A DNA stretch of 64,000 nucleotides from Geosiphon pyriformis uo1 (lineage: Eukaryota; Fungi; Glomeromycota). Each line of letters begins with the position of its first letter. Within the stretch, counting starts at the first letter, position 1. Where the stretch lies: NCBI GenBank assembly GCA_016748015.1, contig JAAOMT010000602.1, forward strand, positions 1,563,696 to 1,627,695, given 5' to 3'. The translations under genes and the position numbers were made by a program. The notes beneath the pieces were generated by a model. The model was not told the origin of the DNA and did no database searches. It was given only the letters and a program-made list of their open reading frames with translations. This document shows positions 5,099 to 64,000 of the stretch, one piece after another.

Positions 5099-6439
5099 CT
5101 ACTTAGCCGAAGCTTTAGAAAATATATAGTTTTTCGTGATTTGAAAAACTTCATAATCATCAAATAAAAATTCTACCGCTCTTTTTTCGGACCCAGGCAT
5201 TATAATGTGCTCATAATTTGCTTCCTTTAGACAAATGCATGGAATAGATTGAAAATTAAAACTATATGTTCGAATACTACCACAGCCAAATTGNNNNNNN
5301 NNNNNNNNNNNNNNNNNNNNNNNNNNNNNNNNNNNNNNNNNNNNNNNNNNNNNNNNNNNNNNNNNNNNNNNNNNNNNNNNNNNNNNNNNNNNNNNNNNNN
5401 NNNNNNNNNNNNNNNNNNNNNNNNNNNNNNNNNNNNNNNNNNNNNNNNNNNNNNNNNNNNNNNNNNNNNNNNNNNNNNNNNNNNNNNNNNNNNNNNNNNN
5501 AAACCGTAATGACTGAGCGTCAAGAGATGTTTGATGACTCCCCGGTACTAGATAATGGTGTAAAAGATCTTCATATAAGGTTCCAGGTAAAATTCTAGCA
5601 AATGGCTTTACTTTATAATAAAAGTCAACTGAAGATATATTGAAGAACCGGATTAAAGGTAGAAATTCTCCAATAGATTCCTTAAAAGCTTCAAAGTTTT
5701 CATCTGTCCAATTAAGAACTTTATCCAATTGAATCCCATTGCTTAATTTAGCTGCTCCCCATTCTAAAATCTTTTTCCATATTTCAATTTCTTCCATATT
5801 TAAGTCATCCCGAGATAAAATTGAGCAAAGAGCATTTTTATTAAGAGAGGTAAAATCTTGAGAGTTAAAGACTGTAGCTGGATTGTTGACAGCTATTTCG
5901 GTGCAGAACTTTTGTAGCTTATTGAACGAATGATGGTTGAAGGATGTTTCATTAAAAGTGGTAAAATTTTTTTCCAAATCTGTTGCATGGTGTTCAATTA
6001 GATAATCTTCAAGGAGATCAATAAGGTTTTCTAGAATAAGTTCATCAGCGACAATAAGCAATTCTAAGATTGTAAGTGCTCCGTGTTCATTAAGAGATAT
6101 TTCACCACTATAAATGTATCTAGATAAAATAAAAAAATTAAATACTCATGAATAGAAATATTAAGCCAACAAAATTACTCACCGAAGAATCACCTCAAAA
6201 ATATCGGGCGATATATTAGGCTTAGAAAAGACGATAGTGTTATTTTCTCTTTTAACCAAATCACTAGAGAGCGCTACAGCAAAATACAAGGATCTTGCTA
6301 CTAAAATTTGTGAATGAACATGAAAAATTCTAATATTAGGCGCTTCGCCAACAGCAATCCTAACATCAGAAAAATTCTGACTATTCAATAAGCTCTTAAA
6401 ATCGTGAGATAAAGTGTGAAAGAGTTGTTGGGGTGCCAT
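5099..6439 (-). CDS. BTB/POZ-BACK-TLDc domain protein, copy 1 (exons 6439-6183, 6119-5099; N-gap 5294-5500)
   Basis: BTB start FSDVRIAVGE..FHVHSQILVARSLYF. A 63-nt GTGAGT..CTAG intron (6182-6120) joins EVILR to YIYSGEISL in frame. BACK motif SRDDLNMEEIEIWKKILEWG; TLDc C-terminus DDYEVFQI. Confidence 0.88.
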
Positions 6440-8083
6440 TGATAAGATATAAGAAGTTTAAAATAATATGTTTTAAAAAGAAGGGTATTTAAATTATTAA
6501 TATGCATTGGTTACCATAAATGATCAACCTGCTGCAGGAAATTTTATAAAAAGGTAATAATTCCCTTATCATTTAAGTTCTTTTAGCAGAAAACTTTTAT
6601 ATACCCCAAGTCCATTAAAACTAATTTTATTTCGAAGTTTCAAGAAATTCCCACTGTAAGTTAAATTGCATTTTTGAGGAACAAGGATAATATCCCAAAA
6701 ACACTTATCATACAACAACATATTAGTATTTTTTAGAAGTTTTCTTTATTTAAATCAAAATCCACCAAAAATAACCTACATTCCTTTAAAAATAAGATTA
6801 TAAAAGCTGTGCTAAATACTATACACAAATAAAATTTAATCAAAGAAACTTTCGATGTGAATAAACAAATAAATTCATTATATTGATTAAATATATCATG
6901 CTTAATAATTTATTATTCATTATTTTTATTACTATAAATAAAAAATATTTTTTAAATTTCATACAATAATTATTAAATTGTGATTAATAAATTTTGAATT
7001 TAAATATTCGTAATGACTACTTTAAATTTTTATAATAATAATTAAAATTTCTAATAAAAAAAACCAATGTGAAATAATATATAAATATTTATTTTAAATT
7101 CTAATTTATATTGCCTATTAATTTTCAAATTAAATATTGATTTAGAATTTATGTAAAATGATAAGCTAAAGTACAGCTGATATAGCAATATGTTTGAATC
7201 GGCATTATTAAAATTCAATATTAAATGTTATTCTTTATGTTTTCAGTTTTAATATTCATGTCTATTATTTATTTGAATTTTTTTGAACACATTTTTTTCA
7301 TTATTTCATTTCTTGTTTTTTTGTTTGTTTTACAATAATATTTTTAAACTAGTTTTTATTTTTTTATTTTTTTATTAATAAAAAAAACTTAGAAAAAACT
7401 TGAAAACATTATTTTTAAATAAATTTATTGAATATATTATTGTAATAAGTAGAATTAAAAAGCAAATATATATATATTACTATAAAAAACTAATATATAA
7501 TACATAAAATACAGTTGCTTAATTTTAATAAGATTAAAATAGCCTATTTGAATAACAATTAATAATATTTTAAACTTTTATTTATCTTAGTTCTTAATTA
7601 TTATAACCGGCTCAATTTATAGATTAAAAAGTTTAGTTAATAAAAGAGATAATAACAAAATATTTAAATTCTTCTAACAGGAATATGTGTGTTAATATAG
7701 CTTTTATTGTTTTTTTTTTAAACTAAAAATTTTGATTTAATCAACAAAAAATGATTTTTGAACATAGAAAATGAAATTTTTTGTTATTTTGCATTTTGAT
7801 GCAAAAAATAGTTTACTATTAAGTTAAAATCTTAGATTTAAATCATGAAAAATAAAAAAATTTATGAATTAAATAGCTTAAGAGGTTTTTTGAATTTATA
7901 AAGTTCTTGGCAAAACACAATAATATTGACATTTATAAATGTCAATTCATCTTTTTTACATTTATAAATATTAAATTTGTCTTATTTATATTCACAATTA
8001 GTTTCAAACTTTATCTAAATTTTTATTCTATTAAATGCTCTTCTGTAATTTTAAAAGAAAAATGAGATGTATATAAAATAGTA

Positions 8084-9485
8084 CAGTCAAACCTAAAATA
8101 ACTCATACTGAAATAACTCATAACCTGTGATAAGCCATAACATTTTGAATCTACCAATTTGGTAGTTAAAAAATTCCTATGTTTATAACCCATACCTGTG
8201 ATACTCAATAACCCATAACTTTTTACTATTAGTATGGGTTATCTCAGATGCTAGATTTAGTTTAAATTCTGCTAATTTTGGTAAAATTGCAGTAAAGCAA
8301 ACCAATATTTCTGTGACTAAAAATGCTATATGATAATGTAACATCACTTATTCAACAGAATGATCATTGATTATATAAGTTATCAAGTCGGAGTTTCGAA
8401 TTGTCCCAAGTTCTAAATTATCATTGATTGTATGAGCAATCAAGTCGGAGTTTCGAATTGTTCTAAGTTTTAAATTATTATTGACTTTGTGAATAATCAA
8501 GTTGGAGTTTTAAATTGTCCCAAGTTCTAAATTATTATCAATTGTGTGAGTAATCAAATTAGAGTTTCGAATTGTTCCAAGTTTTAAATTATTATCAATT
8601 GTGTGAGTAATTAAGTCAGATTTTTGGATCAGCCCTATCTGATCAGAGTCTTAATCATACTTTTCCTTTGCCTTTTGATTCCACCATGTCTAATACCAAA
8701 AAGCATACTATCTCTTTAGCTTGTGTTTCACAAAGTTGTGAGAATGCTACACTACATGATAAGCTTATAGTGCTTGATTGATATCATGCAAATGATAAAA
8801 ACCAATTAAAAACTGCAAGGCACTGCAAGGAAAACGGTTTTCCATATATGAAACAGCCTCTAGTTTCGGCTTGGGTCAAAGATGAACCAAATCTTCATCC
8901 ATGACCAAATACAATGCGTGACTTGACTAGCAAGCATATATGCACAGTATGTAATCCTGACTTTGATAAAGCACTTATTATTTTTGTTCAAGAGGCAGAA
9001 TCGCATGGAATAATACTTACTGGAGATGTAATTCGAGCTGCTGGCATAAAATTCTATGATCAATTAGATATTCCAAAAAATAAGCACCAAAAAATATCTA
9101 ATGACTGGCTTGAAAGCTTTAAAGACCGTATTGGCTTGCATTCGCTTCACTTTTATGGTAATGCATCATTAGCTAATATTGAGCATATTGAAGATAAGTA
9201 AGTGCATGTAATGACACTTCTTGCTAATTAGAAGTTATGCGAGATTTTTAATATAGATGAAACTGCACTATTTTATGCCATATTACCAAATTAAGATCTT
9301 GTTACAATACTATGTCATAGCACCAAACAATTAAAAGTGCAATTAACACTTGCCTTTACAACCAATACTGATAGAACTGAGTGTTTGCCACCACTTATTA
9401 TTGGTCATGCTAAATGTCCATGCTGTTTTCAAAAAAAAACAGGAGAGCAACTTGGTTTCTAGTATTATTTAAACACTTGTGCTTA
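8084..9485 (+). mobile_element. pogo/Tigger-like (CENP-B HTH + DDE_1) DNA transposon, 5' part, decayed
   Basis: TA|CAGTCAAACCT terminus at 8082-8094. ATG near 8686. CENP-B/Tc5 HTH (LTGDVIRAAG..ISNDWLESFKDR), first catalytic motif IFNIDETALFY (9244-9276), then LTLAFTTNTD..LPPLIIGHAK..KKTGEQLGF. Several stops; truncated near 9485. Confidence 0.85.
8363..8625. repeat. 57-bp tandem repeat, about 4.5-5 units, in the pogo 5' UTR
   Basis: TCAAGTCGGAGTTTCGAATTG-like core recurs at 8383, 8440, 8497, 8554 and 8611 (period 57). Confidence 0.9.
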
Positions 9486-10361: not shown

Positions 10362-12621
10362 GTCATCTATAAAAAAAATGTATATATGAGTATTGTTACA
10401 TGATCAAGTTTGTATTTGCGATTAATCAAGAAGAAAAATGCGCATGCAATAGACCTTTAATAATCTGGTGTGCCATAAGGAGTTTGTTGAAAACATTCCT
10501 CTTTTATCATTAAGAAGACCATGGCCAACTTCATTGAACACCTGATAAACCTTCAATCATCTGGTGTGTGGCAAGAAGTTTGTTAGAAACATTCCTTTTC
10601 TATTGTTAAAAAGACCACGGCCGACTTTCCAGTGAAACTCACCTTGAAAAAGATACATAAAAACAAAGAGAGAGAGAAAAAAGGCAGGAAGGAAGGACAA
10701 AGGCTTTTTGCTGTAAATAAGTTATCTATAAAAAACATGTATATATGAGTATTGTCACATGATCAAGTTTGTATTTGCGATTAATCAAGAAGAAAAATGT
10801 GCACGCGATAGTCCTTCAATCATCTGGTGTGCTGTAAGAGGTTTGTTGGAAACATTCCTCTTCTATTATTAAGAAGACCACAGCAACTTTCATTGAACAC
10901 CTGATAGACCTTCAAGTGAAACTCACCTTGAAAAAGTTACATAAGAACAAAGAAAGAGAGAAGAAGAGCAGAAAGGGAGGACAAAAGTCTTTTGGTGTAA
11001 ATAAGTCATCTATAAAAAACATGTATATATGAGTATTGTCACATGATCAAGTTTGTATTTGTGATTAATCAAGAAGAAAAATGTGCATGCGATAGTTTTT
11101 CAATCATCTGGTGTGCTGTATGGGTTTGTTAGAAACATCCCTCTTCTATTGTTAAGGAGACCACGGCCGACTCTCATTGAACACCTGATAGACCTTCAAT
11201 CATTTGGTGTGGCGCAAGGGGCTTGTAGAAACATTTCTCTTCCATCGTTAAGAAAACCACGGCCAACTTTCGCTGATTATCTAATAGATTTTCAATTATC
11301 TGGTGTGCTGCAAGGGGTTTGTTGGAAACATTCCTCCCTTATCATTAAGAAGACCATGGCTAACTTTTGCTGATCACCCAATAGATCTTCGACCTTCTGG
11401 TGTGCCACAAGGGGTTTGTTGTAAACATTCATCTTCAATCAATAAGAAGACCATGGCCAACTTTCGCTGATCACCCGATAGATTTAAATCATCTGGCGTG
11501 CTGCAAGGGATTTGTTAGAAACATTCCTCTTCTATCGCTAAGAAGACCATGGCCAACTTTCGCTGATCACCCAATAGATCTTCAATCTTCTGGTGTGCCA
11601 CAAGGGGTTTGTTGTAAACATTCCTCTTCAATCGATAAGAAGACCACAGCCAACTTTCACTGATCACCTGATAAATTTCAATCATCTGGCATGCCGCAAA
11701 GAGTTTGTTAGAAACATTCCTCTTCTATCGCTAAAAAGACCACGGCCAACTTTCGCTGATCACTTGATAGATTTCAATCATTTGGCGTGCTGCAAGGGGT
11801 TTGTTAAAAACATTCCTCTTCTATCGCTAAGAAGACCACAGCCAACTTTCGCTGATCACCCGATAGATTTAAATCATCTGGCGTGCTGCAAGGGGTTTGT
11901 TAGAAACATTCTTTTTCTATCACTAAGAAGACTACGGCCAACTTTTGCTGATTACCTGATAGGTTTAAATCATCTGGCGTGCCACAAGGGGTTTGTTAGA
12001 AACATTTCTTTTCTATCGCTAAGAAGACCACGGCCAACTTTCGCTGATTACCTAATAGGTTTAAATCATCTGGCGTGCCACAAGGAGTTTGTTGGAAACA
12101 TTCCTCTTCTATCGCTAAGAAGACCATGGCCAACTTTCACTGATCACCCAATAGATCTTCGATCTTCTGGTGTGCCGCAAGGGGTTTGTTGTAAACATTC
12201 CTCTTCAATCAATAAGAAAACCACGGCCAACTTTCGCTGATTACCTGATAGATTTAAATTATCTGGTGTGCCACAAGGGGTTTGTTGGAAACATTCCTCT
12301 TCAATCGATAAGAAGACCACGGCCAACTTCATTGATCACCTGATAGACCTTCAATTATCTGGTGTGCCACAAGGGACTTGTTAGAAACATTCCTTTTCTA
12401 TTGTTAAAAAGACCATGGCCAACTTTCATTGAACACCTGATAGCTCTTCCAGCGAAACTCACCTTGAAAAAGTTACATAACAAAGAGAGAGAGAAAGGAC
12501 AGGAAGGGAGGACAAATGGCTTTTGTTGTAAATAAGTCATCTATAAAAAAGATGCATATGAGTATTGTCACATGATCAAGTTTGTATTTGTGATTAATCA
12601 AAAAGAAAAATGTGCACGCGA
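10362..12621. repeat. Composite tandem array: about 17 units of 96/97 bp, interrupted or flanked by 4 copies of a ~180-bp module
   Basis: CCACGGCC-type core recurs at 11161, 11257, 11354, 11451, 11547, 11644, 11740, 11836, 11932, 12028, 12124, 12221, 12317 and 12413. The module (GAAACTCACCTTGAAAAAG...GATCAAGTTTGTATTTG) occurs near 10362 (partial), 10630, 10915 and 12449. Confidence 0.93.
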
Positions 12622-12764: not shown

Positions 12765-13165
12765 TGAAGAGAGAGAAAAGAACAGGAAGGGAGAACAAAA
12801 AAAAAAAAAAAAANNNNNNNNNNNNNNNNNNNNGAAAAAAAAAAAAAAAAAAAAAAAGAGAGAATGGAAGAAATGAGGGACAAAAAAAAGGAAGGGAAAA
12901 AATGAAGGAAAAGAAGTGATAAAGAAAGGAAAAAAAGAAAGGGAAGTGATAAAGAAGAGAAGAAGTGAAGCGATAAAGAAAGGAAAAAGTGATAAAGAAA
13001 GGAAGAAGCGATAAAGAAAGGAAGAAAAGGAAAGGAAGTGATAAAGAAAAGAAGAGAAGAAAGAGAGGTAATAAAGGAAGGAAAGGAACGAAGGGAAGCG
13101 AAGTGATAAATAAATGAAGAGAGGTAATAAGGGGAAGGAATGGAACGATAAAGGAAGCAAGGACT
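12765..13165 (+). repeat. Polypurine low-complexity tract (GAAGTGATAAAGAA-like units) with a 20-N gap
   Basis: Almost purely A/G on the + strand. Confidence 0.85.
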
Positions 13166-15592: not shown

Positions 15593-15697
<105 letters not shown>

Positions 15698-16566: not shown

Positions 16567-18046
16567 TTAATTTTTGATAATTAAAAAAACTTCATACTCA
16601 TCAAAAAAAATTCTACCATTGTGTTTTCTGACCCAGGCATTATAACGTGCTCATAATTTGTTTACTTTATACAACTGCATGGAATAGATTGAAAATTAAG
16701 ACTATATGTTCGAATACTATCACAGCCAAATTGGGGTCCGAACTCTTTATGACAAAAAGGTCCAAATCCACTAATAAACTTGCTAAGTTTGGCATTTTGA
16801 GCTTTGCCATCTCCAAGGGTAAAAATAAAACTTCCCTCTCCATTTAAATAATAATCTAAAGAGTTCCAAGCTTCTGGGCTATAGCCACCAATCAATTGAC
16901 CAGTTCCTTTGACTTTGGTTACAGCAATTGTTGCTCCTTTGTTATCACACAACCGATGAAAATTATTTGGTGAGAATCCGTCTCGACTGCCTCGAAGTAG
17001 TAATTTAAAATCATTTTCAAGTTGATCTTCCAAAGGAGTATTTTGGTCTTTGCCTTGAATCCAATGATCAAGCTGTTTTATATTATGTGATTGGAGAAGC
17101 TTTGAATCATTTAAGCAGGAAACACGTAATGGCTGAGCATCCACAGACTCTTGATGACTACCCGGTACTAGATAATGCTGTAAAAGATCTTCATATAAGG
17201 TTCCAGGTAAAATCCTCGCAAATGGCTTTACTTATGATAAAAGTCAACTGAAGAGATGTTAAAGAACCGGATTAAAGGTAGAAGTTCTCCAATAGATTCC
17301 TTAAAAGCTTCAAAGTTTTCATCTGTCCAATTAAGAACTTTTTCCAATTGAATGTCATTGCTTAATTTAGCGACTCCCCATTCTATAATCTTTTCCCATA
17401 TTTTACTTTCTTCAATATTTAGGTCATCCTGGGATAAAATTGAGCAAAGAGCATTTTTATTAAGGGAGATAAAATCTTGAGAGTTAAAGACTGCAGCCGG
17501 ATTGTTGACAGCTATTTCGGTGCAGAACTTTTGTAGCTTTTTGAACGAATTATGGATGAAGGATGTTTCATGAAAGGTGGCAAAAGTTTCTTCCAACTCT
17601 TTTGCATAATGTTCGATTAAATAATCTTTAAGGTGATCAATAAGTTTTTTTAGAATAAGCTCGTCAGCGGCAATAAGCAATTCTAAGATTGTAAGTGGTC
17701 AGTGTTCATTAAGAGATATTTCACCACTATAAATGTATCTAGATAAAATAAAAAAAGTAAATAGTCATGAATAGAAATATTAAGCAAAAAAGTTACTCAC
17801 CGAACAATCACCTCAAAAATATCTGGCGATATATTAGGTTTAGAAAAGACGATAGTGTTATTTTCTCTTTTAACCCAATCACCAGAGAGTGCCATAGCAA
17901 AATACGAGGATCTTGCTGCTAAAATTTGTGAATGAACATGAAAAGTTCTAGTATTAGGCGCTTCGCCAACAATAATCCTAACATCAGAAAAATTCTGACT
18001 ATTCAATAAGCTCTCGAAATCGTGAGATAAAGCGTGAAAGAGTCAT
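16567..18046 (-). pseudogene. BTB-BACK-TLDc copy 2, pseudogene (intron 17800-17739)
   Basis: 11-nt deletion right after the ATG (ATG[GCACCCCAACA]ACTC), a 1-nt deletion near 17232, GAA>TAA at 16662-16664, and a 1-nt deletion near 16605 relative to the paralogs. Confidence 0.88.
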
Positions 18047-18769
18047 TGATAAGATATGAAAAGTTGATTTTAAAAAGAATTTTAATTTTATATTAATATT
18101 AATATGCATTGATTACCATAAATGATAAACCTGCTGCATTTAATATCGTTTAAAGTTGTTTTGACAGAAATTCTCATTGTGAGTTAAAATTGCATTTTTG
18201 AAGAGCAAGGATAGCATTCGAAAACACTTTTCATAAAAAATGGTATTTTTTTAGAAGTTTTCTTTATTTAAATCAAAAATTCACTAGAAATAACTTAAAT
18301 TTTTTTGAAAATAAGATTATAAAAGCTGTGCTAAATATTATATACAAGTAAAATTTAATTAAAGAAATTTTGGTGTGAATAAATAAAATGAATTCATTAA
18401 ATTTATTATAACATAAAATGTTGAAAAAACTTTGTCTAAACGTAAATGTTCGTATTTATGCTTCATTTAATAGCTTACAGCTTTATATGTCTTCTTATAA
18501 CTTATTCATTATAGATTTCGATTAAAATATATAATATTATTAATTATTCATGATGACTATACTAAATCTTTATAATAACAAAATTGAATTTATTTAAAAA
18601 AAATTTAAAATCTCCTAATGTGAAATAATGCAATATATAATATGTAATTATTTATTTTAAAATTCTAATTTTAATTTTTGAATCAAAATTAATTTAATGA
18701 TAGGTATAAGTACAACTGATATAACAACATGCCTCACTCGGCATTATTAAAATTCAATAATAGTCAAAG

Positions 18770-20132: not shown

Positions 20133-21623
20133 TTAGAGGATTTGAAAAACTTCATACTCATCAAACAAGAATTCTACCGTTGTATTTTCTGATCCAGGCA
20201 TTATGGCGTGCTCATAATTTGTTTCCTTTCGACAACTGCATGGAATAGATTGAGAATTACTACTATAGGTTCGAATACTCCACCAGCCAAATTGGGCCAC
20301 GCAATCTTTATGACCAAAAGGTCCATATCCACTAACGAATTTGCTAAGCTTAGCATTTTGAGGTTTGCCATCTCCAAGAGAAAAAATAAAACTTCCCTCT
20401 CCATTTAAATGTGAACCTAAAGAGTGCCAAGATTCCGGGGTATAGCCGCCGATCAATTGACCAGTCCCTTTGACTTTGATTACAGTAACTGTTGCTCCTT
20501 TTTTATCACATAACCGATGGAAATCATTTGGTGAGAATCCGTCTCGACTGCCTCGAAGTAGTAATTTAAAAGCATTTACTGGTTTGTTTTGAAAAGGAGT
20601 GTTTTCGTTTTTGCCTTCAATCCAGTGATTAAGCTGCTTTATATTGTGTAGTTGAAGAAGCTCTGATTCAATTTTTGATTGTGAAAACCGTAATGACTGA
20701 GCGTCAAGAGATGTTTGATGACTCCCCGGTACTAGATAATGGTGTAAAAGATCTTCATATAAGGTTCCAGGTAAAATTCTAGCAAATGGCTTTACTTTAT
20801 AATAAAAGTCAACTGAAGATATATTGAAGAACCGGATTAAAGGTAGAAATTCTCCAATAGATTCCTTAAAAGCTTCAAAGTTTTCATCTGTCCAATTAAG
20901 AACTTTATCCAATTGAATCCCATTGCTTAATTTAGCTGCTCCCCATTCTAAAATCTTTTTCCATATTTCAATTTCTTCCATATTTAAGTCATCCCGAGAT
21001 AAAATTGAGCAAAGAGCATTTTTATTAAGAGAGGTAAAATCTTGAGAGTTAAAGACTGTAGCTGGATTGTTGACAGCTATTTCGGTGCAGAACTTTTGTA
21101 GCTTATTGAACGAATGATGGTTGAAGGATGTTTCATTAAAAGTGGTAAAATTTTTTTCCAAATCTGTTGCATGGTGTTCAATTAGATAATCTTCAAGGAG
21201 ATCAATAAGGTTTTCTAGAATAAGTTCATCAGCGACAATAAGCAATTCTAAGATTGTAAGTGCTCCGTGTTCATTAAGAGATATTTCACCACTATAAATG
21301 TATCTAGATAAAATAAAAAAATTAAATACTCATGAATAGAAATATTAAGCCAACAAAATTACTCACCGAAGAATCACCTCAAAAATGTGGGGTGATATAT
21401 TAGGTTTAGAAAAGACGATGGTTTTATTTTCTCTTTTAAAATCACCACTAGACAGCGCTACAGCAAAATACGAGGATCTTGCTGCTAAAATTTGTGAATG
21501 GACATTAAAACTTCTAATATTAGGCGCTTTGCCAACAGCAATCCTAACATCAAAAAAATTCTGACTATTCAATAAACTCCCAAAATCGTGAGATAAAGCG
21601 TGAAAAAGTTGTTGGGGTGCCAT
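20133..21623 (-). CDS. BTB/POZ-BACK-TLDc protein, copy 3, intact (exons 21623-21367, 21303-20133)
   Basis: 63-nt intron 21366-21304. TLDc motifs FKLLLRGSRDGF..FHRLCDKKGATVTVIKVKGTGQLIGGY..SFIFS..EYEVFQI. Confidence 0.92.
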
Positions 21624-22717
21624 TAATAAGATATCTTAAAAAGAAAGGGATTCAAATTTTATATCTGGAAAGATGATAAACCCGCTGCAGAAAAATGATC
21701 TATTAGAAGTAAACTTTTATACAGTACATCACGAGTCTAATTACTGCATATTAAATAAATTCTAAATTTAAAGATTCGAGATTTTTTAGCATATAGCTTA
21801 TATTTTATTATGTTTATAAAAACATTCTGCTTTAAACTAATTTTAAGAAGTGTTATGTCATGAGATTTGTTTAAATTATCAATACATTTGAAAACAGCAG
21901 CATTTAGTGTTGAATAATATAATTAAAAGTGCTTTTTTAAGAAATTAATTTTCTTGCAAGGTATATTTATTCATTTCTATAAAATAAAGCTGCAAGCTTT
22001 TCAAAGTATCTGAAATAAAAAACATAATATTTAAAGCATAACTGTCTTAAAAGTAAAAATATTGTAAAAAGATTTATATCTTGACAAAACAATGGTCTGT
22101 CTCCATTAGTAAACCAAATTTTAAATTTTTTTTTTAAAAGTAATTGAGATTTTGCATGATTAAGAAAATATAAATAGCTAAATATTATTATTTAAAATCA
22201 TCAATGAAAACAAAATTTTTTATAAATATATACAATATAAAAAGAAATTTTCTCTTTTAATATGAAATTGTGTGTATGTATATTTTTCCTAAAAAGGGAT
22301 TATCATACACCATGATATTAGTATTTTTCTTTATTTAAATCAAAATTCCTGAAAAATAAGATATAAAATCTGTGCTAAATATTATACACAAGTCAAATTC
22401 GATTAAATAATTTTTCATGTGAATAATAAAATGAATACATTCATGTAAAATGTGAAAAAAAGCTTTTAAATAAACACAAAAGAAATCTTCAGATTTTTAT
22501 TTTATTAAATAGCTTATAGCTTTGTAAGTCTTCTTAAATGTTTTATAATTATTTAATAATATTATATAAAACTATTTTTAAATTAATTATTATTTATAAA
22601 AAATTTCTAAACCTAATTTTAACACAATAATTAATAAATTGGCAAAAACTTGATAGTAATATTAAAAACATTAAATTTAAAGATATATTATAAATATTGT
22701 CAAATTTTTATCCAACA

Positions 22718-26654: not shown

Positions 26655-28478
26655 TTAATTGGATGGATCTGAAATTGTTTCTTCTTTTCCAGATTCAGTT
26701 TCATGATGGGAGGTGATGAACAAACCAATTATGGTAGCAATACAAGAGGAAATCATTGCCATGAAAAAAACTTTTTTCAATGCTTCTGTATAAGCCTCAA
26801 GATCTTTGTCACTCTCACTCTGGGATTTATAAATATTAAATGATTCATTCTCATGCGATATGGCCAATTCTCTTGAATTCATCTCAAAATTGTACACAGC
26901 TCCAGCGATAACAATCCCAAGACAACTGCCTATTGTTCGGAAAAGCACAATTACTGAAGTAATCAATGGAATGTCCTTTGAGTTAATAGCAGCATTATGA
27001 GCTGTTATAAGAGAGGTTTGTAACGAACATCCGAGCCCAGCTCCAGCAAGAAATTGAAATCCGAATATAGCTGCTGTACTTGAATGCTGGTTAAATCTAG
27101 AGAATGAATCGGCTGCAAAGGCAATCATGGCAAACCCAATAGTAGCCATCCAGGGTCGAAAATAACGAGTTCTTGATGTTGTAAATCCTATAAGGGAGAG
27201 AGGAATGTATCCAAGTAATAATGGATAAATCTGTAATCCGGCTCTCACAATACTGTACCCTTTCACAAATTCAAAGTAAATTGGCAAGTAAAATATAAAA
27301 ACAATTAAGTTTAAACCTAATAAAAGGTTGAAGATGAAAATAACGAGATAATTTCGGATTTTAAATAAATGTAAAGGGATAATTGGTTCACTTGCAAAAA
27401 ATGATTCGACCAGAATGAATCCCAAAAGTAAAACTACACCAGTGCAAAATAGCATAATTACAAAAACAGAGTCCCATTCGTATTTATTTCCACCCCAAAT
27501 AAGAGGAAAGACGATCGCTAGTATCCCCAAAAATAATATGGTGATACCCAAAAAATCAATGTTTTTTAATTTACCACTGACCGAATCTTGAATTTTGGAA
27601 AGATACCAAAGAGCAAAGATAAGAGAAGTGGTCAAGCTGCCAATCAAAATGTTTAAATAGAATTCCCATCTCCATGATGTGTATTCGAGAAATATTCCAC
27701 CAATAAATGGTCCAATAACTGTGCCAAGAACATAAACACCTTGAATTATTCCATGATATTTGCCATGAGATTGAACTTGAACAATATCTGATGTGATCAG
27801 TATATACAAAGAAAGGATTCCACCGCTTCCAAATCCAGATATACCACGACTCAAAATTAGCATTATCGTATTCTGTGAAGCGCCACATAAACTGGATCCA
27901 ATTAGAAATATCAACATGGCTAAAAGAAACATATATTTTCGTCCAAGTATAGCTGAAATCTTTCCAAAAAGCGGTTGGGATGCTACTGACATTAGCAAGT
28001 ATATGGTGTTAATCCAGACCAAGTTTGATGATGAATTAGAAAATAAATTTATTTTTGAAATAGAGGTAGCAAGTATTGTTTGATCCAGAGAAACGACAAA
28101 TATTATAAGCGAGAGCGAGCAAAAGACAATGATTCTTGATGAAATTGGCAGTTTTGTTTTAGGGTCAAAATGAAATTCTTCGTATTGGTTTCCTATTTGA
28201 GTATCAGATAAACTTGGCTCCATGACTTCTACCAGTGTTTCTTCTATATCATTACTTAATGTTAAAGTGGGATAATTGGGTTCTTGGGTGATTGTCAAAT
28301 CGTTGTCTGAATCATTCCAACGTTCGTTGTTGTTGATGTTGATCATTGTGAACTGCGATGATAGTCTTGGAATTGTGTGATATTTTCCTTTAGAATGTAA
28401 ATCAGAAGGATCTATATTCGTACTGGAACTCTGAAAATTCTCGCTCTCAATTGATTTTACTAAATTATGAGCTGCCAT
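26655..28478 (-). CDS. MFS transporter, DHA2 (14-TMS drug:H+ antiporter) type, 607 aa, intronless
   Basis: Motif D1 LDQTILATSI, motif A-like FGKISAILGRK, GPFIGG..SWRWEFYLN, EPIIPLHLF, YLPIYFEFVKG; many TM segments. Confidence 0.93.
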   Translation of the reverse strand: MAAHNLVKSIESENFQSSSTNIDPSDLHSKGKYHTIPRLSSQFTMININNNERWNDSDNDLTITQEPNYPTLTLSNDIEETLVEVMEPSLSDTQIGNQYEEFHFDPKTKLPISSRIIVFCSLSLIIFVVSLDQTILATSISKINLFSNSSSNLVWINTIYLLMSVASQPLFGKISAILGRKYMFLLAMLIFLIGSSLCGASQNTIMLILSRGISGFGSGGILSLYILITSDIVQVQSHGKYHGIIQGVYVLGTVIGPFIGGIFLEYTSWRWEFYLNILIGSLTTSLIFALWYLSKIQDSVSGKLKNIDFLGITILFLGILAIVFPLIWGGNKYEWDSVFVIMLFCTGVVLLLGFILVESFFASEPIIPLHLFKIRNYLVIFIFNLLLGLNLIVFIFYLPIYFEFVKGYSIVRAGLQIYPLLLGYIPLSLIGFTTSRTRYFRPWMATIGFAMIAFAADSFSRFNQHSSTAAIFGFQFLAGAGLGCSLQTSLITAHNAAINSKDIPLITSVIVLFRTIGSCLGIVIAGAVYNFEMNSRELAISHENESFNIYKSQSESDKDLEAYTEALKKVFFMAMISSCIATIIGLFITSHHETESGKEETISDPSN

Positions 28479-52749: not shown

Positions 52750-54246
52750 ATGTCACCCCAACAACACTTCCAAGCTTTATCTAATGATTTCGGGAATTTA
52801 TTTAACACTCAGAAGTTCTCTGATGTTAAAATTATAGTTGGCGAAGCGCCCAATATCCAAACTTTTCATGCCCATTCGCAAATTTTAGCAGCAAGATCAC
52901 CATATTTTGCTGTCGCACTCTCTAGCAATTGGATTAAAAGGGAAAAAAATATCATTATATTCCCTAAACCTAATATTTCACCAAAGATTTTTGAAATAAT
53001 TCTCAGGTAAGGGTTTTCATTTGCTTCAAATATTTTGGCCAACATAAGACTCACTGTTTTGTTTCCTGTAGATACATTTATAATGGCGAAATTTCTCTTG
53101 ATAAACATGGAGTACCTACCATTTTAGAATTCCTTGTTACAGCTGACGAGCTTATTCTAGAAGACATGATTGACCACCTTGAAGACTATTTGATCGAACA
53201 CCGTGCAAAAGAGCTAAAAGAAAATTTCACCACTTTGCAGAAAACTTCATTTATGCATGATTGTTTCAAAAAGTTACAAAAATTCTGCATCGAAATAGTT
53301 GCTGAAAATCCAGCAATAGTCTTCAACTCGCAAGATTTCACTTCCCTTAGTGAAAATGCACTTTTCTCAATTTTAACCCGGGATGAACTAAATATAGAAG
53401 GAAATATGGGAAAAGATTGTAGAATGGGGAGTTGCTAAATTGGATAAAAATATTCAGACGAAAAAAGTTCTTTACTGGACAGATGAAAACTTTAACGCCT
53501 TTAAGGAATCCATCGAAAGGCTTCTACCTTTAATCCGCTTCTTTAACATATCTTCAGTTGACTTCTATCACAAAGTAAAACCATTTGCGAGAATCTTACC
53601 TGGAACTTTATATGAAGATCTTTTACATCATTATCTCGTACCGGGTAGTCATCAAAAATCTGTAGACGCTCAGCCATCACGTTTTCCACAATTAAGTATT
53701 AAATCGGAGCTTCTTCAACCCCACAATATAAAACAGCTTGATCACTGGATTCAAGGCAAAGACGAAAGCACCCCTTTTCAAAACCGACATGGAAATGATT
53801 TTAAATTGTTACTTCGAGGCAGTCGAGACGGATTCACTCCAGCCGATTTTCATCGATTATGTGATAATAAAGAAGCATCAGTAAGCGTAATAAAAGTGAA
53901 AGGAACTGGTCAGCTAATTGGCGGCTATAACCCGCAGTCTTGGCACTCTAGGAATAGTTGGTTGGAGGGAAAACGAAGTTTTATATTTTCCCTTGGAGAT
54001 GGCAAACTTGGAAAGGCTAAACTTAGCAAATTTGTTATGGAATTTGGACCTTTTGGTGGGCCATATAATGGACCCTCTTTTGGAAATGGCAATATTGGAT
54101 TGTATGGCAAGGATTTTAAAAATAGTCCAGGGGCCTATTGTAAAAAGACAATAGATTATGAGCATGCTATAATGCCTGGGTCAGAAAATCAACAGGTGAA
54201 TTTCTTTGTCGAGGAGTATGAAGTTTTTCAAATTATAAAAAGATAG
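52750..54246 (+). pseudogene. BTB-BACK-TLDc copy 4 (most divergent, inverted), single frameshift
   Basis: Intron 53007-53071. At about 53400, GAA G|GAA ATA TGG lacks 5 nt relative to GAA GAA ATT GAA ATA TGG. Otherwise the frame is open. Confidence 0.82.
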
Positions 54247-57724: not shown

Positions 57725-60700
57725 TTATTTATATGTATTAGTCATTAATGTCATTAATTAGCCATCTTATTTTTAGAATTAATTATTAATATAATTATTA
57801 ACATAATCAATAACTTAATTATTAACTTAGTTATTAATTGGGTTATTAATCTAATCATTGACTTGATTACTAATCTAATTATTAATTTTTTTTGAAAGTA
57901 TATAAATGAACTTTTTAAAGCTATAAAAAGACATTTACACTTGACTTATACTCAAATTAATATAATAATATTAACTTTTTTTAATTTTTTATTATTATTT
58001 GTATAATTATTAGTTTTTGTAAAGTATATTGAAGAAATATTTACTGAAAAATACAATTAATATCTAATATTAAATTCTAAAAGCATTAATATAAGACATA
58101 GAATTATATTAATGTATTATTTTTTGTTAACAATACAGACTATTTTTTTATTTTTGAATTTTTTTGTTATCTTTTAAAAAAAATAACAACTAAAATATTT
58201 ATAAGACTAATCTTACACATTAAATTTTTACTAATTTAATTTACTTATTAAAGTTGAATTATTTTTTTGATTGTTTTATTATTATACAAAGTTATTTTTT
58301 CTTGCTATTTATTAGTTTGTTAATTCGACTGTAATATTATAGTTGAATTTCTTATTTATTTAACCATAATTAATCATATGTATTAGTTATTAATATTATT
58401 AATTAACTATTCTATTTTTAGAATTAGTTATTAATATGATTATTAACTTGATTAATAGCTTGATTATTAACTTAATTATTAACTTGATTATTAATTTAGC
58501 TATTAATTTAATTATTGATTTAATTATTGATTTAATTATTAACCAAATTATTAATGTAATTATTGCTCTAATTATTAATTCTTTTATAAAACTATATAAA
58601 TAAAAACTCTTTAAATTTTAAAAAAAGTATTTATATTTAAATTATATTTAAATTAATATAATAATATCAACTTTTTATTTTTTTTTACTTTTTTTTACTT
58701 TTTTTCTTGATTTGTATAATTATTAGTTTTTGTAAAATATATTAAATAAAAATTTACTGAAAAATACAATTAATATCTAATATTAAATTTTAAAAATACT
58801 GATGTAAAACATAAAATTATACTAGTGTGTTATTTTTTGTTGACAATATAAATTATTTTTTTACTTTCAAATTTTTTTGTATTTTTAAAAAGAATAATAA
58901 CTAAAATATTTATAAAACTAATCTTGTATATTAAATTTTTATAAATTTAATTTGTTTATTAAATTTAAATTATTTTTTTAATTATTTTATTGTTATACAA
59001 TACTGTTTTTTTTTGTTATTTATTAACTTGTTAATTAGAATATACAATAATTTACTATTTAATAAACAAAAAATATTAAAGACAAAACTTTGTTTTATAA
59101 GTTTTTTGTTTTTTGGTTTTTATTAAAGTTTTACAAAGTATTTAATTAAAATACTTTATCAATTTATTTGTTTGAAAATATTAAAAAAAAGATTTGTAAT
59201 ATAATTTAAGTTTTTTTGCTAATAAATTAACAAAACTTTTTTTCTATTTAAAAGTAAATTTTAAGATATTTATAATAATTTATAATTTTTTTATATATAT
59301 TATTAACAATTAAAATAGCTATTTAATTTGATATTTTATTTATTTTTTTAAGTAATTATTGCTGTAATAATATATTTGTTTTTATTAAAAATTACTGTTA
59401 AGAATTTAACTATATTGATTTTAATTTTTTTAAAAAGTTGATTAACAAATATTTAATAAATGTTTTCTTTTTAATTAAATTTTTTTATTAATAAATAATT
59501 TAAAGATTAATAATAATATTATATTAGTGTTTTTTAAATTGTTTTATTAATAAATTTATATACATATTATATATTTCAATTTTTTTTTGATATTTTTGAT
59601 ACAATTAATTCTAATAAATCAAATAGAAATTTAAATATTTTTACAAATATTTTTTTTGGAGATGATTATAATTTGATAAATATTATTTTTATTTAAAATT
59701 TAATAAAAGCTAAATTATTTTCTAAGTCTATTATTATGTTTGATTTTAAATAATACAAATAATTAATTTGTGAAATTTTTACTAAAATTTTTTATTGCTA
59801 AATTGTTAATTAAAATAAAGTATTTGTATTTTGATTATTTTTTTTGATATTTAATTTTATAATTATAATTATATAATTGAGAATTTAATAAATAATTTGT
59901 TTATATATCAATATTTTTTTGTTTTATAATTAGACTAAGGTTTAATAATTAATATATATTATAAAATAAATACTTAAAAAATATTGATTTTAATAGTTAA
60001 TTGTTTAAACTATTATTAAGCATTTTTTTTTAATAATAATATAATTCTGTTTGATTAAAAACATTATTCTATTTATATAAACTATAATATATTCATTTTT
60101 GTATTGGCTGGATTAAGAAAAATTTTATTTTTTAAAATAAAATAACTTAAAAAACAAATAAATTGATATTTAAAAAATAATTTAATAGGATTTATTTTGA
60201 AATTTGTATTAAAAGTTTGTTAAAAATAAGTTAAATGCTTTTAAATATATAATTATATTATTATATTTGGAACTTTTACTTTTTAGTTTTATTTATTTAT
60301 TTATTTAGTTATATATATTAGCATTAATAATATTATTAATTATTTTATTTTTAGAATTAGTTATTAATGTGATTATTAACTTAATTAATAACTTTATCAA
60401 TAACTTGATTATTGAATTATTTAGTGTTGTCCTGACTGGTTCGAGTGGCTGGTCACGTGTAGAAAGTGCATGATTCGCGCTTAGTTTAGATCATTTCTTT
60501 GATGTATAGTTCTAAGTAGCGTTTGGACTTCACTCGTTAAATGTTAAAAAAAAAAAATTAGTTATTAATTTAATCATTAACTCAATTATTAACCAAATTA
60601 TTAATATAATTACTAATTTGATCATTAATTTTTTTTATTAGTATATAAACGAAATTTTTCAAAGCGATAAAAATTTATTTACACTTCGATTAATTTATTT

Positions 60701-61080
60701 AAAGCAATAATTAATACAATAATATTGACTTTTTTATTTTTTTTAACTATTTTTTGACTATTTCTTTCTTAATTTGTATAATTGTTAGTTTTTGTAATGT
60801 ATATTGAATAATTATTTACTAAAAAGTACAATTAATATTTGATATTGAATTTTAAGAGTATTAATATAAGATATACAATTATACCCGTGTATTAATTTAT
60901 ATTAATGATATAACTATCTTTTTATTTTTTTATTTTCTTGTACTTTTAAAAAAAATAATAACTGAGATATTTATAAAACTGATTTTACTAATTCAATTTG
61001 CTTATTAAAAGTTGAATTACCTTTTTATTATTTTTATTTTTATACAATACTGTTCGCTTTTGCTATTTATTAGTGTATTA
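57725..61080. repeat. Triplicated ~600-700-bp AT-rich unit (about 57725-58330, 58370-59040, 60315-61080) with 12-bp ATTATTAACTT(A/G) subrepeats
   Basis: Shared strings such as TTTGTATAATT(A/G)TTAGTTTTTGTAA and TACAATTAATAT at about 57998, 58711 and 60773. Confidence 0.85.
60420..60557 (+). mobile_element. Short A-tailed dispersed element, copy 3, inserted into the triplicated unit
   Basis: GAGTGGCTGGTCACGTGTAGAAAGTGCATGATTCGCGC...CTCGTTAAATGTT followed by a run of about 12 A; absent from the two sister units. Confidence 0.7.
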
Positions 61081-61639
61081 TACCTAATTATAACATAAAA
61101 GTGATGCTTTTTGTAAAATTGTCAAACTATTGAATTCATTTATTATTGTATGGACAATTACTTTTTTTTATAGCACAAAAAATCTAAAATAATTTTACAG
61201 CCCATAATTAAAATGATTTAGTTTATATTAAATTTAATCTTCTTTCATTTTATCTTATTTGTTTTCCAGTTGAAAAAAAATCTAGTTAACAGTTTCAAAA
61301 TTTTTTGATCAATTATATAGTAGAAATTTATTTAGCATACACAGTTTACTTTTTTAATAAGAAAAAATTTGAAGCAAAAAACAATTATATTAATTACTTT
61401 TAGTCAACTTTTCCTCGAGTTTGAAATCTTAATTAACAAATTCACAATTGAATTACTGCTCATTAATTGACTGAAACTTTTTAAGAAACCAAAAACAAAA
61501 AAGCTATTCAACAACTCCTAGTTTTAAACTTTTTTTAAGCAATTTAGACTTCTTATCTCGAACTTCAACATTTGTTATGGCTCTTGTTAAAGCATATATA
61601 TTACTTACTCTTCAAGATATTTAAACTGTTCTAAGTTGT

Positions 61640-62520
61640 TAAAATATAAGTCTTTTATCTTTGTTTTGAGAAGATTCTCAAGATCCAATAGATTGGCTTG
61701 AAAAATTTAAAAAAACTACTACTGCAAATTAGTATAATAATAATTACAAGTTTCAAATAATTAAAGGATATCTTTAAGGGTTTTCTGTTATATAGCTCAT
61801 CCAGAAAATAACTAGTGGAGCTGTTTAACAAATTGTTTAATAATTTTCTAAGAATACTGGTCAAAATAATTACTGAATATGCCAAAGCAATTCAGAAATT
61901 AATAAAATAGGTAGATTCAAGAAGAAACTGGATGGAAAAAAAAGATTCACTTTTTTACTAGAGATTTATAAACATATTTATTATATGTTCTATGGCCTTT
62001 TCTTACGATAAAAAATAATTTCACATTAGATACTACAGTAGAATTGGAGTGCATAGAAGACAATTAACAGATTCACTTAAGAAACATTCTTCCACTGCTG
62101 ACAACTGCTTCAACCTTTGCTCCTGCTCTCTAAATGACTGTTATATTATTTACTGTCTATGTTCAAGACCCAAATAAACAATTAATAAATAGACTGATGG
62201 CAAATTTGGCCAGACTTTTAGAACAATTAGCAAGAACTGTTCAAGAAAATCAGAGATCCCCAAAACCTCAATATCAGTCTTGTTATAATCAGCAGCAACA
62301 ACCCCAATATAATCCAAGGCCTAAAGAGCAAAGTCATTCAGTTTGTTATTGATGTAGAAATACTAACCACAAGGCACAACACTGTAAAATCCTCCTATGC
62401 CTCTGCCAAATTTGAGAAATAAAAATCAATAGAATAATGGAAACAACAACAACCGTGCTCCTAATCAAGAAGCTAATCAGGCCTATGTAAACTTCTTTGG
62501 AGAAAATCCTTTACTCAAAG
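61640..62520 (+). mobile_element. LTR-retrotransposon gag remnant with CCHC zinc knuckle
   Basis: QDPIDWLEKFKK..AN..KFQIIKGYL, a Q/N/P-rich linker, and C-Y-*-C-R-N-T-N-H-K-A-Q-H-C (62344-62385) = CX2CX4HX4C. Confidence 0.75.
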
Positions 62521-62758
62521 CAACAGAATAAGAGTTTTTAAGCCAGCGGGCACATCTTTCGAGGTTAAGAGTGCAAGCCGAGAGGAAAAAAACTCCTTGT
62601 TTAGTTTCAATTTAATTGATAAGAATATGGAGTTACAAGAGATTTTATGCCTTTCTTGGAAGGCTTAGAGCAATAGGCTATATAAAACTATGTGTGTACG
62701 AATTTCAAATTAGGAGCCTTATTTAGCCTAACCTTTAGAAAATATCTAATCCAGGGAA

Positions 62759-64000
62759 TTAATTTTTCTGGATTTGAAAAACTTCATAATCATCAAATAA
62801 AAATTCTACCGCTCTTTTTTCGGACCCAGGCATTATAACGTGCTCATAATTTGCTTCATTTAGACAAATGCATGGAATAGATTGAAAATTAAGACTATAT
62901 GTTCGAATACTACCATAGCCAAATTGGGGTCCGAACTCTTTATGACCAAAAGGTCCATATCCACTAACGAATTTGCTAAGTTTAGCATTTTGAGGTTTGC
63001 CATCTCCAAGGGAAAAAATAAAACTTCCCTCTCCGTTAAAATGTGAACCTAAAGAGTGCCAAGATTCCGGGGTATAGCCGCCAATCAATTGACCAGTCTC
63101 TTTAACTTTGATTACAGTAATTGTTGCTCCTTTGTTATCACATAATCGATGAAAATCATTTGGTGAGAATCCGTCTCGACTGCCTCGAAGTAGTAATTTA
63201 AAAGCATTTCCTGGTTTGTTTTGAAAAGGAGTGTTTTCGTTTTTGCCTTCAATCCAGTGATCAAGTTGCTTTATATTGTGTGGTTGAAGAAGCTCTGATT
63301 CAATTTTTGATTGTGAAAACCGTAATGACTGAGCGTCAAGAGATGTTTGATGACTCCCCGGTACTAGATAATGGTGTAAAAGATCTTCATATAAGGTTCC
63401 AGGTAAAATTCTCGCAAATGGCTTTACTTTATAATAGAAGTCAACTGAAGATATGTTAAAGAACCGGATTAAAGGTAGAAATTCTCCAATAGATTCCTTA
63501 AAAGCTTCAAAGTTTTCATCTGTCCAATTAAGAACTTTATCCAATTGAATCTCATTGCTTAATTTAGCTGCTCCCCATTCTAAAATCTTTTTCCATATTT
63601 CAATTTCTTCCATATTTAAGTCATCCCGAGATAAAATTGAGCAAAGAGCATTTTTATTAAGAGAGGTAAAATCTTGAGAGTTAAAGACTGTAGCTGGATT
63701 GTTGACAGCTATTTCGGTGCAGAACTTTTGTAGCTTATTGAACGAATGATGGTTGAAGGATGTTTCATTAAAAGTGGTAAAATTTTTTTCCAAATCTGTT
63801 GCATGGTGTTCAATTAGATAATCTTCAAGGTGATCAATAAGTTTTTCTAGAATGAGTTCATCAGCGGCAATAAGCAATTCTAAGATTGTAAGTGCTCCGT
63901 GTTCATTAGGAGATATTTCACCACTATAAATGTATCTAGATAAAATAAAAAAATTAAATAGTCATGAATAGAAATATTAAGCCAACAAAATTACTCACCC
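62759..64000 (-). CDS. BTB-BACK-TLDc copy 5 (exon 2 63935-62759; intron 63998-63936; exon 1 outside the window)
   Basis: Open 372-aa ORF with BACK and TLDc motifs and the same 63-nt intron. Confidence 0.88.

Follow-up and report, generated by a model that had tools for sequence, protein, structure and literature searches.

Cullin-3 adaptors of the KLHL/KBTBD type (KLHL11-Cul3, 4AP2; KBTBD2-CUL3, 8H36) carry an N-terminal BTB domain, then a helical BACK domain, and a Kelch propeller in the substrate-receptor position. Adaptors of two other kinds, MATH-BTB (BATH) and F-box proteins of nematodes and grasses, were reportedly the subject of [quoted passage not shown] (Thomas, 2006; cited in PMC1866355 and PMC4334554). 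The TLDc domain is known from NCOA7, mEAK-7, Oxr1, Rtc5p, and TBC1D24, all of which are V-ATPase partners (PMC9263379, PMC8804929), and strict conservation between yeast and animals is reported for the residues that contact the V-ATPase (PMC8804929). In Glomeromycotina, TLD (PF07534) reaches up to 400 copies and BTB/POZ is among the high-copy "signalling" genes, for which ROS protection or environmental sensing has been proposed in domain-count studies (PMC8647823; PMC10079182).

The BTB-BACK-TLDc family of Geosiphon pyriformis belongs to the same gene set as these expansions; its fused architecture, hypervariable loops, selection signal, and paralog recombination were not found described in the literature searched. 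BTB and BACK match KLHL/KBTBD proteins in order and fold, and the C-terminal domain again occupies the substrate-receptor position. However, that domain is a TLDc beta-sandwich, and the family is thus of the same design without being a strict KLHL/KBTBD member; Cul3 binding is putative here. With the MATH-BTB and F-box families it shares large, clustered, lineage-specific expansions, birth-and-death turnover with pseudogenes, a conserved cullin/Skp1-docking domain (docking being putative in this case), positive selection limited to a few sites of a (here putative) substrate-binding domain, and a proposed innate-immunity-like role. It differs from them in using TLDc rather than MATH or FTH/FBA as the recognition domain, and in having BACK, a fungal host, and prominent recombination between paralogs.

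Five BTB-BACK-TLDc genes in the analysed window

The window, which is the whole 64-kb stretch of G. pyriformis DNA that was analysed, contains five BTB-BACK-TLDc genes at the positions first assigned to them:

5099-6439, minus strand: copy 1 (G9A89_010461), with exon 1 at 6182-6439, an intron at 6119-6181, and exon 2 at 5099-6118
About 16572-18050, minus strand: copy 2 (G9A89_010463), a pseudogene
20133-21623, minus strand: copy 3 (G9A89_010464 = P0001, 475 aa), intact, with exon 1 at 21366-21623, an intron at 21303-21365 (63 nt), and exon 2 at 20133-21302
52750-54246, plus strand: copy 4 (G9A89_010469), a likely pseudogene, with an intron at 53008-53072
62759-63934, minus strand: exon 2 of copy 5 (G9A89_010471 = P0122, 477 aa), intact, coding for the end of BTB, BACK, and TLDc
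About 63935-63997, minus strand: intron of copy 5, whose exon 1 lies past the window end (seen in L001)

The original prediction had called these genes an array. All five copies are present, and so are the five peptides quoted from them, but they form a loose 59-kb cluster rather than a tight one, with an MFS transporter, histone H2A, and other ORFs in between. Of the five genes, copies 3 and 5 alone are intact in the window, and two (copies 2 and 4) are broken. Copy 2 has lost its ATG, its exon 2 soon meets an in-frame stop, the frame shifts past ...FYHK, and ...CSCIK is followed by a premature stop; in the public annotation (P0029), artificial introns span these lesions. Copy 4, a more distant branch that is about 70% identical to copy 5, has its frame shifted within BACK by a 5-nt deletion near 53401. 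Copy 1 is interrupted by an N gap (5294-5500), and most of its TLDc is unread, including half of the variable stretch. The sequence on the two sides of the gap corresponds to residues 1-187 and 318-372 of a paralog, which means that approximately 390 nt are absent; as only 207 N are written, frame continuity across this gap is meaningless. A further gap (12814-12833) lies in A/T low-complexity DNA and touches no copy.

Domain architecture and predicted fold

The proposed BTB, BACK, and TLDc architecture is borne out by both Pfam and predicted folds. PF00651 (BTB; E 2.6e-18, P0001 residues 15-129) is directly followed by PF07707 (BACK; E 8.6e-10), and TLD (PF07534) is matched at E 2.1e-12, with 47.7-53.3 bits against a gathering cut-off of 24.5. 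The PF07534 alignment spans profile positions 3-169 in copy 4, but for copies 3 and 5 it is limited to the N-terminal half (positions 4-95). In the AF2 model (pLDDT 85.8), the BTB part folds like that of SPOP, KEAP1, and KLHL11, and Foldseek matches to KLHL11 BTB-BACK and KBTBD2-CUL3 complexes have E values of 1e-9 to 1e-8 (for KLHL11 BTB-BACK 3i3n, 1.4e-9 with a target TM of 0.62). A TLDc-only model (pLDDT 88.8) matches solved TLDc proteins with Z 13.5-19.5 and rmsd 2.4-3.0 Å over 148-164 residues (Z 19.5 for NCOA7-AS, 18.2 for mEAK-7, and 15.7 for Oxr1); for 7obp, Z is 19.5 and rmsd 2.4 Å over 156 residues, compared to Z 4.7 for the next unrelated fold. The TLDc core motifs GSRDGF, GG[YF], W, and SFIFS are invariant. 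At the putative Cul3-contact loop (BTB alpha3-beta4) the family keeps [F/I/V]-K-R-E; for the phi-x-E Cul3-contact motif, HMMER sets G-L-S-E of KBTBD2 against G-D-F-K-R-E with a one-residue gap, an ambiguous alignment. The G. pyriformis genome has four cullin loci, and the BTB-BACK-TLDc architecture is common to all sampled Glomeromycotina.

Hypervariable patches in the TLDc domain

A short hypervariable TLDc region on a conserved scaffold had been predicted from a few copies, and comparison of 45 intact paralogs agrees with this, resolving three hypervariable loop patches (V1, V2, and V3):

20211-20339, minus strand: V2 of copy 3, P0001 residues 408-450, FVSGYGPFGHKDCVAQFGWWSIRTYSSNSQSIPCSCRKETNYE
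62843-62971, minus strand: V2 of copy 5, exon-2 residues 303-345
62882-62944, minus strand: the stretch originally singled out in copy 5, HKEFGPQFGYGSIRTYSLNFQ, inside V2
63029-63055, minus strand: V1 of copy 5 (SLGSHFNGE), a beta-hairpin tip
62804-62818, minus strand: V3 of copy 5 (KRAVE)

Most positively selected sites are in V2, around an invariant G-P-x-F-G motif, and V3 contains exon-2 residue A356 of copy 5, one of the four strongest. DSSP on the predicted models assigns 7 of 11 selected sites to loops and 4 to the edges of strands. Because the patches also contain invariant residues (G-P-x-F-G, C, and Y-E), this region is not free of constraint. In homologs from Rhizophagus, Diversispora, and Acaulospora, variability is again highest in these loops. 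In an 11-gene tandem array of R. irregularis, pN/pS is 1.18 in the patches versus 0.27 in the scaffold.

Turnover and recombination among paralogs

Genome-wide, the family comprises at least 115 matches among 433 candidates, many per contig and about 30% with in-frame stops; TLD matches number at least 151. The duplicated unit is about 1.8 kb, consisting of a short promoter, two exons, and a short 3' end, and outside it the flanks of the copies cannot be aligned. The near-identity noted for copies 1, 3, and 5 across BACK is confirmed at the nucleotide level, with 0/561 differences between copies 1 and 3, 16/744 between 5 and 3, and 9/561 between 5 and 1. However, copy 1 has a mosaic structure, being identical to copy 3 in the 5' part of exon 2 and near copy 5 at its 3' end (7/165 differences, compared to 26/165 against copy 3). 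When tested on the other half of the gene, the trees of the 5' and 3' halves are each rejected (p-AU 2.5e-40 and 7e-56). The scaffold near-identity of copies 1, 3, and 5 is thus partly due to recent gene conversion and not to constraint alone. The family turns over by three routes, namely unit duplication, frequent decay into pseudogenes, and exchange among paralogs through recombination or gene conversion.

The mosaic structure of copy 1, the conflicting trees, and the unalignable flanks are all consistent with another account, in which conversion homogenises the 5' two thirds of each gene and stops before the 3' end, so that the tip merely retains older divergence. Over independent paralog pairs, however, scaffold and patches are less than twofold apart in synonymous divergence (0.11 vs 0.19) but 4.6-fold apart in nonsynonymous divergence (0.046 vs 0.21). 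Similarly, copies 3 and 5 show equal dS in the two parts (0.095 vs 0.106) and an 8-fold difference in dN, and BACK protein keeps an omega of 0.33 even across paralogs that are only 62-70% identical. This account is therefore very improbable as the whole explanation; judged from these sequence comparisons, conversion adds to the contrast between scaffold and tip without explaining it.

Tests of selection on individual loop sites

Positive selection had been proposed from a comparison of copies 3 and 5, and recounting the quoted stretch reproduces the reported figures exactly, with 8 codons differing nonsynonymously and 1 synonymously, including TAT/TGG, GGT/TGG, and CTT/AGT. However, omega for this pair is about 0.95 in that stretch (1.4 over all patches), and the stretch has a value of 0.84 when 12 independent paralog pairs are combined; the 8:1 count alone is thus no proof of positive selection. 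The proposal stands instead on family-wide site models, which place dN > dS at approximately 8-12 loop positions.

These models were applied to the 45 intact paralogs using FUBAR/FEL-like tests of our own implementation rather than PAML or HyPhy. BTB/BACK and the TLDc core are conserved across the paralogs (dN/dS 0.33-0.43); parsimony dN/dS is 0.33 in BACK, 0.43 in the TLDc core, and 1.30 in V2, and 92 sites are under purifying selection, which indicates that the genes are constrained. Averaged whole, the patches are about neutral (dN/dS 0.8-1.3), and because the patch-wide omega is near 1, the case for selection rests on heterogeneity among sites and on this implementation. V1 and the quoted stretch also have elevated synonymous change. 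Adding classes with beta > alpha gives 2ΔlnL = 67, compared to 1.4-10.6 in 14 null simulations; the value is 54 with a tree from the 3' region alone, and 69.5 and 50.4 when the model allows two-nucleotide changes. The FEL-like test marks 13 sites, 11 of them in patches, and four (P0001 412, 418, 426, and 461) pass BH q < 0.1. Site posteriors are poorly calibrated (0-31 false sites in null simulations). On the tree, the 11 patch sites have accumulated 282 nonsynonymous versus 18 synonymous changes, and the top sites 20-35 versus 0-5 each. Of the loop positions with dN > dS, five fall in the originally quoted 21-codon stretch (Fisher p = 3e-4). By these models, a few TLDc loops change faster than neutral on a constant frame.

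Relaxed constraint could produce this picture if unconstrained surface loops drift neutrally in a redundant, decaying family and if recombination, alignment, or multi-nucleotide mutation has created the apparent dN > dS sites. The near-neutral patch average and the share of broken copies, in the window and in the family, are compatible with such drift. Recombination is rife among the paralogs and can inflate selection tests of this kind, and the two-hit model fits much better (ΔlnL 268). Two smaller sets with few sequences also gave no significant selection test, namely a second Geosiphon subfamily (2ΔlnL 6.6) and the R. irregularis array (2ΔlnL 13.1 and 8.1). Against this, the likelihood gain for omega > 1 is 6 times the largest null-simulation value and persists with the region-specific tree and the two-hit model, the top sites are strongly skewed towards nonsynonymous change, invariant residues persist within the patches, and families that expanded independently in other genera vary in these loops too. 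Relaxed constraint as the only cause is hence considered unlikely.

Variable loops and the V-ATPase contact face

Compared with mEAK-7, 6 of 8 contact residues (PMC9263379) fall in V1 and V2, as judged from a weak alignment (E 1.1) with a positional offset, and V1 aligns with the loop (Pro316/Gln317) that contacts V-ATPase subunit A. The variable loops would coincide roughly with the mEAK-7 loops that touch the V-ATPase.

One reading of this overlap is that the TLDc domain still binds the pump, with BTB-BACK oligomerising or recruiting Cul3 and the loops tuning affinity or specificity for isoform, state, or compartment. Every solved TLDc protein that matches the model is a V-ATPase partner, and the core motifs shared with those proteins are invariant here. 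However, the loops that would match the contacts, whose residues are reported as conserved in known TLDc proteins (PMC8804929), are hypervariable in this family, and a single conserved pump gives no reason for more than 100 diverging paralogs. In copies 3 and 5, moreover, the C-terminal half stays outside the alignment to the Pfam TLD profile. Known TLDc proteins further differ in lacking the fusion to BTB-BACK and such large paralog numbers. A role in V-ATPase regulation seems improbable on this balance, somewhat more so than relaxed constraint.

A candidate repertoire of target-recognition adaptors

The preferred reading, to which a probability of roughly 60% is assigned, is that these genes encode lineage-expanded adaptors in which the TLDc binding face has become a variable target-recognition surface, each paralog bringing its own partner to CRL3. 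BTB-BACK, held constant, would most likely dimerise and dock on Cullin-3 as in KLHL/KBTBD proteins, as suggested by fold and domain order, and the TLDc beta-sandwich core is kept constant as well. In the codon models, approximately ten loop positions in the C-terminal half of TLDc, flanking the invariant G-P-x-F-G, change in amino acid several times faster than synonymously, most likely because the canonical binding face was turned to target recognition. Each paralog could then deliver a different partner to the CRL3 ubiquitin ligase, and candidate partners may be non-self or fast-evolving proteins, such as viral, endobacterial, or transposon proteins, or partners in allorecognition.

Overall, a constant frame with fast loops is what would be expected of a family that recognises many changing targets. 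More tentatively, and as a possibility that is less probable than the adaptor role itself, the BTB-BACK-TLDc proteins of Glomeromycotina may form an intracellular repertoire against mycoviruses, endobacteria, or transposons, or for hyphal allorecognition, in which a former V-ATPase face would serve as a hypervariable paratope feeding targets to a Cul3 ligase and would owe its diversity to positive selection and to the exchange of tips among paralogs.

Genes and neighbouring features in the window

The window consists of AT-rich, eukaryotic DNA, within which lie five paralogous BTB-BACK-TLDc genes. All five copies follow one plan: a first exon of ~86 codons (most of BTB), an intron of 63-65 nt, and a second exon of ~390 codons that encodes the end of BTB, BACK, and TLDc. 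P0001, the public product of copy 3 (G9A89_010464, 475 aa), matches the Pfam profiles for BTB (E 2.6e-18), BACK (8.6e-10), and TLD (2.1e-12). This annotated product was the protein used for folding; exon 2 was searched directly, and exons were not joined by hand. When the exact product P0001 was looked up on other contigs, none was on record.

Features of the window
Copy 1: interrupted by an N gap at 5294-5500; flanks correspond to paralog residues 1-187 and 318-372
8914-9201: transposon fragment between copies 1 and 2; 95-aa ORF matching the Tc5/pogo transposase DNA-binding domain (PF03221, E 5.6e-9)
11100-12400: tandem array of a 96-97-bp unit repeated at least 13 times, the repeats 60-92% alike
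12814-12833: second N gap, in A/T low-complexity DNA outside genes
16572-18050: copy 2, with pseudogene lesions (ATG lost, stop, frameshift, premature stop)
20133-21623: copy 3, intact
26655-28478: MFS transporter (PF07690, E 2.3e-32) mid-cluster; intact, single exon, 607 aa
36079-36369: partial histone H2A gene (Histone_H2A_C, E 1.2e-19)
52750-54246: copy 4, with a 5-nt deletion near 53401, judged against three paralogs
62759-63934: copy 5, exon 2, intact; exon 1 lies past the window end

In copy 1, ~390 nt are absent where 207 N are written, and thus its in-frame appearance is uninformative. Two pseudogenes become proteins in the public annotation (G9A89_010463 and G9A89_010469; P0029 and P0048), where artificial introns span frameshifts and stops. 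The 96-97-bp tandem array can be read through in one frame, giving 32-residue repeats, and its 215-aa ORF (11593-12240) is without a Pfam match.

Variable TLDc patches across the gene family

A six-frame search of the 128-Mb assembly returned at least 115 family matches from 433 candidates, ~30% of them with in-frame stops, and many contigs carry several copies; a search with the TLD profile gave at least 151 matches. Proteins of this architecture, 35-44% identical, are also present in Rhizophagus, Diversispora, Acaulospora, and Glomus. Variability and selection were assessed on 45 aligned intact exon-2 paralogs, in which entropy is near zero across BACK and the N-terminal half of TLDc and peaks in three patches.

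Variable patches of the TLDc domain
V1: SLGSHFNGE
V2: FVSG...NYE, 43 residues surrounding an invariant G-P-x-F-G motif
V3: KRAVE

The original prediction had singled out a 21-codon segment within V2 from the window alone, and this observation is confirmed: all five peptides quoted are present, and copies 3 and 5 do differ there by exactly eight nonsynonymous codons and one synonymous codon, multi-nucleotide codons included. Across exon 2 as a whole, the same two copies differ by 16 nonsynonymous and 3 synonymous codons in the patches, and by 13 and 15 in the remainder (Fisher p = 0.014). As proof of positive selection, however, the pairwise count does not hold, the omega of this segment being only ~0.84-1.0. 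When NG86 counts are combined from 12 independent sister pairs, leaving out the window pair, omega is 0.84 for the segment, 1.09 across all patches, and 0.42 in the scaffold. Tree parsimony gives 0.33 for BACK, 0.43 for the TLDc core, 1.30 for V2, 1.02 for the segment, and 0.77 for V1, where dS is raised. Averaged over whole blocks, the evolution of the patches is thus close to neutral, which leaves the pairwise argument insufficient.

The evidence for positive selection comes from individual sites. Across the 45 paralogs, a self-written FUBAR/FEL-like grid (MG94 x GTR, F3x4, IQ-TREE tree length 4.24) fitted better when classes with beta > alpha were added (2ΔlnL = 67), against 1.4-10.6 in 14 null simulations drawn from the best-fitting mixture restricted to beta ≤ alpha. 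Because the same simulations exposed site posteriors as unreliable (0-31 false sites), per-site likelihood ratios were adopted. By these, beta exceeds alpha at 13 sites (p < 0.05), and 11 of them fall within the patches, which make up 58 of 370 columns (p = 4e-8); five of the 13 lie in the 21 codons chosen a priori (p = 3e-4). Four sites pass BH q < 0.1 (residues 412, 418, 426, and 461 of P0001), and 92 sites are under purifying selection. Summed over the 11 patch sites, 282 changes are nonsynonymous versus 18 synonymous. The signal is kept on a tree from the 3' region alone (2ΔlnL 54), and under a model allowing two-nucleotide changes, which fits much better (delta 0.14), 2ΔlnL is still 69.5 and 50.4, with the sites unchanged.

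Gene conversion and the duplication unit

A constant scaffold could also arise if paralogs were recently homogenized. Copies 1, 3, and 5 have flanks that are unalignable beyond a unit of ~1.8 kb, inside which they are 97-100% identical up to the end of TLDc. Copy 1 is a mosaic. In exon 2, its 5' part has 0/561 differences from copy 3, and its 3' end has 7/165 differences from copy 5 versus 26/165 from copy 3; blocks alternate in its exon 1 too. Family-wide, the 5' and 3' gene halves each reject the other's tree (p-AU 2.5e-40 and 7e-56). Together, the mosaic copy, the unit-limited identity, and the tree conflict indicate that the constant scaffold seen in the window is partly the product of recent conversion. 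Conversion nevertheless fails to explain the pattern, because between copies 3 and 5 dS is alike in scaffold and patches (0.095 versus 0.106) and yet dN is eightfold apart.

Elsewhere in the Geosiphon genome (G000), locus L029 (C562:24832-28944) looks chimeric, its first ~100 exon-2 residues resembling the L030/L035 group and the remainder L023. The gene unit retains its intron and is thus not a retrocopy. Carriage by a transposon was rejected as well: no terminal inverted repeats were visible where homology ends. Upstream of the ATG, copies 1, 3, and 5 share ~150-200 bp (~6470-6620, ~21650-21800, and, for copy 5, in locus L001, which holds its exon 1) before homology stops. A AATTGGACTTGTGATATACAGTATAAAA-like motif is conserved in this stretch, which may be a shared promoter travelling with the duplication unit.

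Replication in other gene sets

In homologs from outside Geosiphon, variability is highest in the same patches. A tight array in R. irregularis (L091:1-18500; GCA_903189775.1, CAEVNN010000660.1) holds 11-12 head-to-tail BTB-BACK-TLDc genes at ~1.75-kb spacing, with near-identical scaffolds and four variable patches, the extra one (V0) preceding the first TLDc strand. In this array pN/pS is 0.27 for the scaffold, 1.18 for the patches, and ~1.4 for V2. The site test on 11 of its genes is borderline, its 2ΔlnL of 13.1 (8.1 with two-hit changes) lying around the limit of the null values, and zero sites survive under the two-hit model. A second Geosiphon subfamily (nine genes, contigs C702 and C612) gave a non-significant 2ΔlnL of 6.6; its V1 varies in length, with Tyr/Asn-rich inserts. 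At two loci, L084 and L088 (G000 C702:1018300-1020100 and 1025000-1026700), inserts of the form YNYNYN... at the V1 hairpin tip reach ~35 residues. The pattern of constant scaffold and variable loops is general, and formal significance is so far limited to the 45-gene set.

Predicted structure and projection of the V-ATPase face

The AF2 model of P0001 (pLDDT 85.8) has BTB and BACK helices up to residue 276, then a low-confidence linker, and a TLDc beta-sandwich from residue 304. Foldseek matched it to KLHL11 BTB-BACK and KBTBD2-CUL3 complexes (E ~1e-9), as well as to NCOA7/Oxr2 TLDc. A TLDc-only model (pLDDT 88.8) gave Z scores of 19.5 with NCOA7-AS, 18.2 with mEAK-7, and 15.7 with Oxr1, the next unrelated fold scoring 4.7. 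By sequence profile, the family had zero matches among solved TLDc chains at E ≤ 1, the best being a 55-residue match to mEAK-7 (E 1.1). In the predicted secondary structure, the selected sites map to loops or to the edges of strands in consecutive hairpins.

Pro316 and Gln317 of mEAK-7 touch subunit A of the V-ATPase (PMC9263379). A weak alignment, with the invariant W, GG, and SFIFS motifs as anchors, projects these residues into V1. Tyr341, Thr354, Tyr367, and Lys384 of mEAK-7 would project into V2 by positional offset, accurate to a few residues. The contact residues of canonical TLDc are reported to be strictly conserved (PMC8804929), whereas the equivalent loops of the Geosiphon family, by this approximate projection, are its most variable part.

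A candidate recognition system

The interpretation offered in the original prediction is supported in part: the family likely comprises CRL3-type adaptors that diversify in a variable module, TLDc; their Cul3 docking is putative and the Cul3-contact motif ambiguous. BTB/POZ expansions are already known in mycorrhizal fungi (PMC8647823), and TLD reaches up to 400 copies in Glomeromycotina, interpreted as protection from ROS (PMC10079182). Protection from reactive oxygen was the sole published reading of BTB/TLD expansions found in the literature searched. No account of the BTB-BACK-TLDc fusion, of its loop variability, of selection on it, or of shuffling among the paralogs was found there. The closest precedent is provided by expanded MATH-BTB and F-box adaptor families, in which Thomas reportedly described, in 2006, adaptive evolution of the substrate-binding domain (work cited in PMC1866355).

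BTB and TLD domains are hugely expanded in arbuscular mycorrhizal fungi. If BTB and TLDc form one protein with diversifying TLDc loops, this expansion would amount to a testable recognition system, similar to what has been proposed for the MATH-BTB and F-box families of nematodes and grasses. To our knowledge, TLDc is known only as a V-ATPase-binding module; serving as a variable binding scaffold would be a second role for it. Fungi of the arbuscular mycorrhizal type are coenocytic and largely clonal and host endobacteria, and Geosiphon also hosts cyanobacteria. If the reading is true, ~10 loop positions, together with the arrays of several genera, would give a concrete handle on self/non-self discrimination in such fungi.
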